The notes below the pieces were generated by a model. That model saw only the letters and a list, made by a program, of their open reading frames with translations. It made no database searches and was not told the origin of the DNA. A stretch of 64,000 bases of DNA. Source: Camelus dromedarius (taxonomy: Eukaryota). Positions 53,601 through 56,600 of this stretch are shown here, in pieces. The DNA lies in NCBI RefSeq assembly GCF_036321535.1, contig NC_087451.1, positions 37,138,001-37,202,000 of the forward strand, read 5' to 3'. Both the position numbers and the translations under genes were made by a program. Each line of letters starts with the position of its first letter. Within the stretch, counting starts at the first letter, position 1.

Positions 53601-56600
53601 TAATCAAAGTCGTCCAAAATCTTTTTAAGCCAATCATTTGTAGACTGCCTTTTGGGCGATCTGCCCAAGCATATAACCGTTTTGGTAATAATAATTAAAA
53701 ATCGTAAGAGCTAGGTCTTTGCTAGTTTCCACGTTGCACACTTGGCATGAACTGTCATTGATTCATCAACCTTCTTATGAGCCAGGTGGTTTGGGTGGCC
53801 ACTTTACAGATGGAGACACTGAGGTCAGCTCACCCCAACCTCCCAGCTGCAAGCAGTGGGACCAGGATTCAAACCCAGGCGGCTGGATTGCTAAATTCAC
53901 ACTCTGTATAATTGATCCCCACGTTTTTCCAGGGCTAGAATCGTCAAAAAGTTGACAGAGATCTACATAGTAATACTTGTTTTGATTGAAAAACTAGCCA
54001 ATGAAGAAAGACTACTATGAAGTCAGTCACACTTTTAAATTAATCTCTATTTTATTCGTAAATAAAGCAAGAGCATGCCTTTAACATTTTGCAGTGCATG
54101 TATGTGGGCGAAATAATGTGTATTCAGTCTATGGACCGAGCTTGGTGTGCATATGAATCCGTGGCCCCCAAAGGGTCTGCAGCCTACAGGTGTGGGACTT
54201 CTGAATCAGGAGTGGTCCCCTGGAGTTGACATGCCCAAGAGAAAATGGCGCAGGAGAGGTTCCTGTCACCCAAGTCTTGCTTTCTGCCAGAATGGACCAC
54301 CTTCCAGTGGAATCCCATTAGACTGACTTAGATTCCAAACCTTCCATCAACGGAGAGGCTCACTGAAGGCCCTGTGGGTGGGTCTGATGGTGGAAGGAGC
54401 GCTGAATAATGAATCTTAGTTCTAGTCCCTGCACTGCCTTGGAAAAGCACTTATTAAGTACTAGGTGCTTATAAAGAACTAAGTCTAGAAGAATTGGTCT
54501 GGGGTGGGGGAGTCAAGGCCCAGGCAGCCTTGAAAACCACCGCCATATAAGGAGACCTTCCATTTCCCATGTGAAAATCCAAAAACCTAGTTATTTGGTC
54601 AATTTAAATATATAACTTTTCAGAGATGTATGTGAAATGAGTGACTGTCTGCCTATATTTAATTTACTGATAAAAAAAAATCTCATATAAAACAATACAG
54701 AGACTTGGAAATCTTGCTTTTTTTTCCCTCCCAGTCTCACATTTCACCTGTCCTTTTTCTTTTTGGAGCAGCGTAAGGTTTACTGCAGGGCCGAGCAAAG
54801 AGGGCAGGGTGGTTTGTGCCCAAGAAAACCCTGAACTCTGTCCAGAATTTTTGACATTGGTCCTCGCCATCGCTAGGTCGAGTTTGGGGTCAAGGTTAAA
54901 ATCAGTGTTGAATTCTCTTCCCGTCGCCACCACCAGGCTGTTTAAACCAGTTCAGTCGGGTAATAAAACCAGCATCTCTGTTGAAGGAATCTGTCCCAAA
55001 CAAAATGAAGAAACTGAGAGGTGGGGGGAGCCTGTCATTTGCAGGACTATGCAGGGACTTAAATACAGAGAAACTCCCTTTTCTGAGGGACAGTTTGGGG
55101 AGGGGATCCCCTCTTATATCCAAGCATATAAGGTACTTTAAAAAAAAAAAAGCGCTCCTTTTAAAAGAGAATGACAGCAGAGAGCACACACAGTCAGTCC
55201 GGGCTCCAGAAGCAGGCACTCAGCTGAACACAAGAGCCACCATCACGCTCGGGCCATTAGAGAGTTTTAAATTATTGTCACGGTCAGTCGTGCACGTTTA
55301 ATGTAGACTCATAACTGAGCACCAGTTAAGGAGAGGACACAGAAGGAACACTTGATATAGAAACAGGACGTTAAAGAGAAGCATAAAAATCGTAATAAAT
55401 CTGCAGATCCATGAATTGCATTCTCTGAGTGAAGTTCTCGTACGGCACACCAGGGTGCCTGTAGTTTTTAAAAACTGGAAGCTAACAGAAAGTGGATGAA
55501 CTCCGTTTGGGGGAGGAGAAACTGCTCACTCTTGCAGTGGGTTATTTGCAAGAAAGCACATGAAGTAACAGCCTAAAACCTCTTCTCTGCCTTGTCAATG
55601 ACAAACAAAATGCCAAAAGTGCTCAAGTTAACCAGGTTTTTTTTTTTCCTGAATATAATCCAAAAGCTTCCAACATTAGGTCATAAAAGCCATTTTATCT
55701 ATGCTAAGGCCATAGCACAAAGTTTAACATGCATTTTATAAAATTTAGTCCAAAGCCAAAGTAAGTATCATTCTAAAATGTATTTCTTGAAAACGCAGGC
55801 ATTTTTTTCTATACGTAATGTCAAGTAAATAGCATTGGTCCCCTTTTAAAAAGGAAAACAGAAACTTACCTGTGGGTGATGTAAATTATGACTATGATTT
55901 AGAGATTTATTTTAATGTAATACGGTCTGTACAATGAGAACTCCATCTGTGCTTCACATGCTCTGAGAAGCACTGATGTAGAGGAAAAATGATTTTCAGA
56001 TTTAAAGTCACTTCTAAATATGCCATACGAAAATGAGGAAATGGCGTTTCAGAAAATTCTGAAGGGCATCCGAGAGACTGTATGTTCTTATGGATAGAAT
56101 TTAAGAATTAAAGCGAGATTAGGTCACAGGGACGGTCCTTGCTGGCCCGGACTCTGGGCGGCAGTAGTGAGGAGAAGCGGGTCAGGTCTGGGCATACTTT
56201 AAATGTGGCTGCACCTTTTAAAAAAAGGAGTCTCCTCTTTCTGGGCAGCCCCTCACTCTGGTTTCCAGGACCCATGGCCGTTTCTGGCCAAGTGCACGGC
56301 ACGCTTTCAATTTCAAGTGCCGTTTGCGTGCAGCATTCCGCAACATTACGTCTTCTCACATTTATGTTGCTTTTGCGAATGTCATGCAGCCCTACACGGT
56401 AGATTGTAAAATTATCTGAAGATCATCATTCTTCCAGTGATTACTAGCGTCAAGTCAACCTGGGGCCAGAAGCCGGGGTGCCCTTAGTTATTGGGAGGCA
56501 CATTTCTGAATATACACACCCAGCCAATTCATCAAGACCAGGCAAGATGATGCTTTTCAGGAATCCATTAGAGATTTTTTTTAATGTATGTAAATAAACA

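Follow-up and report, generated by a model that had tools for sequence, protein, structure and literature searches.

The closest described relatives of the locus considered here are disease-associated truncations of RI-alpha, the product of PRKAR1A, and a short human transcript of the same gene. Changes in PRKAR1A dosage and truncations at the C-terminus of RI-alpha cause Carney complex and acrodysostosis. In the acrodysostosis mutation R368X the last 14 residues of RI-alpha are lost and the beta-barrel and phosphate-binding cassette are left in place. A stop codon located in a terminal exon escapes nonsense-mediated decay (NMD).

The human short transcript, NM_001276290, encodes a protein of 337 amino acids, and its last exon lies approximately 18 kb past the point at which PRKAR1A canonically ends. 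A variant at hg19 17:66547249 (G>A) has been listed on this transcript as c.998G>A, p.S333N (PMC7155765), from which it follows that the human short transcript is real and that residue 333, in the alternative tail, is Ser. A change of Ser to Asn through G>A requires that Ser333 be encoded by AGY in human. By the coordinates of the gene, hg19 chr17:66,547,249 would lie inside human FAM20A. An earlier reading of the camelid DNA made from sequence only (the sequence-only reading) had put forward a sequence for the human tail, and the position of Ser333 fits that tail (G325 H L I I S R R S333 I P L G337, ending 12 residues past Gly325). In human blood cDNA the alternative exon has been amplified between a forward primer placed in exon 10 and a reverse primer placed in the alternative exon itself, and two genomic primers for this exon were also given (PMC10480295). 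A search of the literature, which included PRKAR1A alternative polyadenylation and the tail peptide, found no paper on the biology or function of the short isoform.

The window analysed here is a stretch of 64,000 nucleotides from the dromedary, Camelus dromedarius, in which positions 23071-62689 on the plus strand correspond to FAM20A. Eleven exons were placed by tblastn with the full-length FAM20A protein (P0015). Exon 1 starts at about 23071 (+) and intron 1 is approximately 27.6 kb long, from 23481 to 51064, with two of the window's three runs of N inside it (the runs are at 14032-14178, 33290-33441 and 48515-48730). Exon 4 was placed at 53455-53533 (+), with an acceptor of 9.3 bits, a donor (GAG/GTAAGT) of 11.6 bits and 95% identity to L016, a genomic contig from another mammal; exon 5, also found by tblastn and flanked by strong splice sites, is at 57156-57248 (+) and comprises 93 nt or 31 residues. 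The candidate terminal exon, at 54030-54219 on the minus strand, is thus inside FAM20A intron 4 and antisense to the host gene, and exons 5-11 all lie beyond it at higher coordinates, as the sequence-only reading had proposed. An Rfam search of the whole of intron 4 gave no match and no repeats were seen in it by self-BLAST or by a tandem repeat scan. Two small open reading frames of the candidate block had no exact match on record in public contigs. A search for relatives of the FAM20A representative, a fish protein, returned only fish among the best 120, and the alignment of this protein to the window exon peptides was too scrambled for a profile. PRKAR1A itself lies past the end of the window, and none of five peptide motifs from the C-terminus of RI-alpha was found in the six frames of the window. 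As the gene is beyond the window, the phase of its exon 10 donor is assumed here to be phase 1, inside Gly325.

The minus-strand motifs on which the candidate was originally drawn are all present where they were claimed to be. The proposed 3' splice site (54220-54260, minus strand) consists of a purine-interrupted pyrimidine-rich tract (cctctcctgcgccattttctcttgggcatgtcaactccag) and an AG at 54221-54220. The exon as drawn is 190 nt long and opens with GG, which would complete the Gly codon, and then GAC CAC TCC TGA. After a phase-1 donor ending in G this gives the tail G-DHS and a stop, the in-frame TGA (54206-54208, minus strand) being the fourth codon past the junction Gly, at a position that is not conserved. 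An AATAAA poly(A) signal is found at 54051-54056 (minus strand), 21 nt upstream of the cleavage site described below. The acceptor at 54220 scores 4.3 bits on a crude weight matrix, which places it at the 89th percentile among 4556 minus-strand AGs and marks it as weak beside the real FAM20A acceptors (7.4-11.8 bits, n=5, same matrix); the matrix was built from approximate consensus frequencies, and only the ranking is therefore to be trusted. An AATAAA or ATTAAA occurs 80-400 nt downstream of 130 of the 520 minus-strand AGs that score at least as well as the candidate acceptor. By motif alone, the pairing of acceptor and hexamer is no more than chance.

Evidence for a relationship with the human exon came instead from the published human primers. 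For the primer cDNA_Rev the only match of at least 18/24 in the window falls within the candidate exon, at 54131-54154 (+), and is oriented as expected. For the sense primer gDNA_Rev a single exact 12-mer occurs, at 54344-54333 (minus strand), just upstream of the acceptor. Each of these matches taken alone is within the range given by shuffled primers, and the comparison, which consists of four human primers, is an indirect alignment to the human exon. The two matches are nevertheless in the right order and orientation and fall together in 220 nt out of the 128 kb searched, which is very unlikely to occur by chance. This co-location makes it likely that the candidate is the camelid orthologue of the NM_001276290 terminal exon. 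One of the arguments first put forward for orthology does not stand, namely that the last nine codons of the camelid tail are each within one substitution of the human ones: the human AGY codon for Ser333 differs from the camelid CCC by at least two changes.

The camelid candidate and the human exon agree in several respects. Both are antisense within FAM20A, both have an AG/GG acceptor in the same phase, and in both the truncation falls within the phosphate-binding cassette of cAMP site B. The camelid candidate is on the PRKAR1A strand, inside FAM20A and downstream of the canonical end of PRKAR1A. They differ in the tail, which in the camelid would end at TGA after three codons (DHS) whereas the human tail has 12 residues. 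They also differ in that splicing from exon 10 is documented in human blood cDNA, whereas the camelid RNA is known from unspliced contigs. The predicted camelid product resembles the acrodysostosis truncations, in that the transcript escapes NMD in both cases and C-terminal parts of domain B are lost. It had been proposed on this basis that the product would be resistant to cAMP, but this was an extrapolation from R368X, in which the cassette stays, while a cut at Gly325 removes the cassette and half of the domain B barrel. Because the cassette and everything after it would be gone, neither folding, stability nor the response to cAMP can be inferred from R368X, and an RI-alpha cut inside the domain B beta-barrel could equally be unstable or more easily activated.

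The minus-strand poly(A) site at approximately 54030 is used in vivo. The evidence is one contig from one run (X2), the RNA nature of which is a guess although the tail itself argues for RNA. This contig covers 54030-54400 with no mismatch at a depth of 20 and, on the plus strand, has 18 T ahead of 54030, corresponding to a minus-strand tail of A18. The genome at this point reads ...aaaagtg/tgactgact, and since it continues as tgactgact and holds no run of A the tail must be non-templated. The tail starts 21 nt past AATAAA, and GT-rich and then T-rich sequence lies beyond. A non-templated tail at this distance from the hexamer establishes that the poly(A) site predicted just past AATAAA is used.

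The same contigs gave a different answer for the splice site. The block present in contigs from RNA runs, 54030-54539 on the minus strand, follows the genome without a break through the proposed acceptor, with X2 covering 54030-54400 and X6, which is on record as an RNA-seq run, covering 54080-54398 and 54389-54539. Coverage of the region 54225-54540, which would be intron if the exon began at 54219, is 0.81 in four runs belonging to P2, the same study as X2, and 0.68 in X6. The main RNA that ends at 54030 therefore matches the genome without interruption over at least 370-510 nt, compared with the 190 nt of the exon as drawn. No joint and no loose end was seen at 54219 in the contigs of X1, X2 and X6, all of which cross it unspliced, and the unspliced contigs that pass through 54219 reach 54400-54540 and come from at least two RNA studies. 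The claim that the exon starts at 54219 by splicing is thus not supported by the X2 and X6 contigs, and a used 3' splice site bounding the exon was likewise not seen at 54371 or 54383, which the contigs also cross unspliced (rare spliced forms could escape contigs). In contig data of this kind rare variants are dropped and contigs matching human DNA are silently left out, so that a contig with a PRKAR1A exon 10 junction could be hidden. The raw single-cell run X24 gave 0 reads on the stretch, from a sample of about 2% of the run that is too small for a test.

A further set of runs marked "RNA?" (X9-X11 and X28) shows a recurrent boundary near 54185, covering 0.11 of 54020-54225 and 0.58-0.71 of 54225-54540. 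An alternative exon edge at this position was considered and rejected, as there are no good splice sites there and a PstI site (CTGCAG) at 54177-54182 coincides with the boundary. This coincidence suggests that the four runs are probably reduced-representation DNA libraries and not RNA. Run X1, which covers the whole of intron 4 evenly, is probably also DNA. A second patch of intron 4, at 55495-56275, is covered by the same RNA runs as the candidate block (X2 at a depth of 19, X6 over 55541-55792). Its ends lack both fitting splice sites and a poly(A) signal, Rfam gave no match to it, and it may belong to a long unspliced antisense RNA or to FAM20A pre-mRNA.

The reading that we favour, with a probability of roughly 0.6, is that the block is the camelid counterpart of the last exon of NM_001276290, with a used poly(A) site, mostly unspliced and a low-level neutral by-product. 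Transcription would run past the normal end of PRKAR1A, continue antisense through FAM20A exons 11-5 and reach 54030, where most of the RNA would end unspliced. A minor fraction, if any, might be spliced from PRKAR1A exon 10 to the weak AG at 54220 and would then encode RI-alpha 1-325 followed by DHS. The spliced truncated RI-alpha, if made, is probably minor and neutral. Read-through (downstream-of-gene) transcripts offer a close parallel, being likewise unspliced and colinear with the genome and on the strand of the upstream gene, with a canonical hexamer in an intron of the convergent neighbour. The parallel is not complete, as a spliced form is documented in human, and the camelid RNA is seen without continuity with PRKAR1A.

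It counts against the favoured reading that PRKAR1A is outside the window and that the RNA at 54030 has been seen without a link to it. In a second explanation the RNA is unrelated to PRKAR1A and is an antisense transcript, unspliced or separately initiated within FAM20A, that ends at 54030. All of the contigs are genome-colinear, that of X2 stopping at 54400 and that of X6 at 54539 with no foreign sequence in either, and the second covered patch in the same runs would also fit such a transcript. The upstream region, however, is without a promoter-like feature or CpG island (GC 0.42), holes in contig coverage prove nothing, and the human orthologous exon has been joined to PRKAR1A exon 10 by RT-PCR (PMC10480295). 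We regard this explanation as rather unlikely.

A third explanation would make the block a regulated last exon, spliced from exon 10 to 54219; the transcript would escape NMD and yield a truncated RI-alpha (...DYFG-DHS) that is stable, with a cAMP-resistant PKA as the result. The phase and acceptor context do match the documented human exon, the poly(A) site is used, and escape from NMD would follow from the established rule for a stop in a terminal exon. The absence of a junction in the contigs, where the dominant RNA reads through the acceptor, argues against it, as do the weakness of that acceptor (4.3 bits), the lack of any literature found on function and the fact that a cut inside the domain B beta-barrel need not mimic R368X. 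Comparisons with other mammals also argue against it. These were made with genomic contigs reached through open reading frame fragments containing FAM20A exon 4, which between them represent 1-3 other genomes; contigs L006-L015, L018 and L020 share exons only or stop at exon 4. L016/L017, which are 69% identical to the window over 53220-54458, represent the one species covering the AG, and in it the acceptor context (TGTCAnCTCCAG followed by GGG) is identical. After the acceptor L016 has a 2-nt indel and reads G-GT-TAA, so that both the position of the stop and the tail differ from those of the camelid. The candidate exon is 62% identical to L016, whereas identity is 65-69% in the intron on either side and 95% in FAM20A exon 4, and the AATAAA is not conserved, being AAATGAAATGAA in L016 and GGATAAAAAAA in L019. 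A further contig, L005, aligns on both sides but is without approximately 53600-55090, which includes the whole candidate, and aligns again with the window from 55641 on at 65%.

No functional constraint on the exon was therefore apparent in these contigs, in view of the exon identity of 62% against 65-69%, the indel in the frame, the loss of AATAAA from L016 and L019 and the absence of the region from L005. When the acceptor and hexamer are weighed against the surrounding intron, as the sequence-only reading had suggested, the result is mixed to negative: the AG is kept in L016/L017, but the hexamer, the frame and the exon body are not. Each species examined has a different tail, and from one mammal the region is missing altogether. 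We thus consider a regulated exon to be unlikely, and because the exon body, frame and hexamer drift the by-product reading, in which the RNA evolves neutrally and is not a selected isoform, is the most likely one.

Two further observations were made in the course of these comparisons. Over L005:2058-2408, set against window 53600-55640, intron 4 of that mammal is without some 1.5-2 kb that is present in the camelid, L016/L017 and L019; judged from the alignments, either this sequence was deleted in the L005 lineage or it was inserted in the others. Immediately past the cleavage site a conserved T-rich block at 53975-54029 (minus strand) reads ACTGACTTCAyAGTAGyCTTT..TAGTTTTTCA and is common to the camelid, L016 and L019. 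Within it 53980-54019 has 85% identity to L016, compared with 62-67% around it, making this the best conserved piece nearby, above both the candidate exon and the hexamer. The block is possibly a downstream element of the poly(A) site or an unrelated intronic element of FAM20A.

It might also be supposed that the terminal exon is longer than drawn and begins at an upstream acceptor, at 54498 (giving the tail D-QFF and a stop when joined to a phase-1 donor), at 54383 or at 54371 (14-residue tail), with the AG at 54220 being internal. Of the acceptor-like sites around the block, cccccaccccag/ACC at 54498 (minus strand) is the strongest; at 8.6 bits it is within the range of the real FAM20A acceptors and is the only one nearby to score like them, and the coverage of about 0.81 of 54225-54540 by the P2 runs would fit an end near 54480-54500. 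The X6 contig, though, extends to 54539, and that of X2 stops at 54400, carrying no foreign letters and showing no break at 54371 or 54383. Moreover, the human protein tail fits an acceptor of the 54219 type. We hold a longer exon to be improbable.

Very little credence is given to a more ambitious view, that a deliberately weak, read-through-dependent PRKAR1A terminal exon is common to mammals and is selected only to cut RI-alpha at Gly325, the tail being irrelevant. A subunit without site B would on this view retune PKA, and the antisense transcription would dampen FAM20A and so couple the two convergent genes. Least credible of all is that there is no antisense RNA, the coverage being FAM20A pre-mRNA or DNA and the 18 T a library artefact, since, although X1 is DNA-like in its even coverage of the intron and X9-X11 and X28 have the PstI boundary typical of reduced-representation DNA, the T18 lies exactly 21 nt past a canonical AATAAA, with GT-rich and T-rich sequence beyond and no genomic A run, and X6 is on record as RNA-seq.

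The overall interpretation offered by the sequence-only reading is thus partly supported: for the locus, the poly(A) site and the human isoform, but not for the splice at 54219, for codon closeness or for cAMP resistance. Given the diseases that result from altered PRKAR1A dosage and from its truncation, a natural RI-alpha without cAMP site B would merit attention were it abundant or conserved. The camelid evidence goes against this: the poly(A) site is used, but no splicing was visible and there was no sign of constraint. Annotating the short isoform as a functional protein calls for evidence of both the junction and the protein. The exon is part of the existing human annotation, and the practical value of the camelid copy is modest, as a checked example of the overlap between the convergent genes PRKAR1A and FAM20A.
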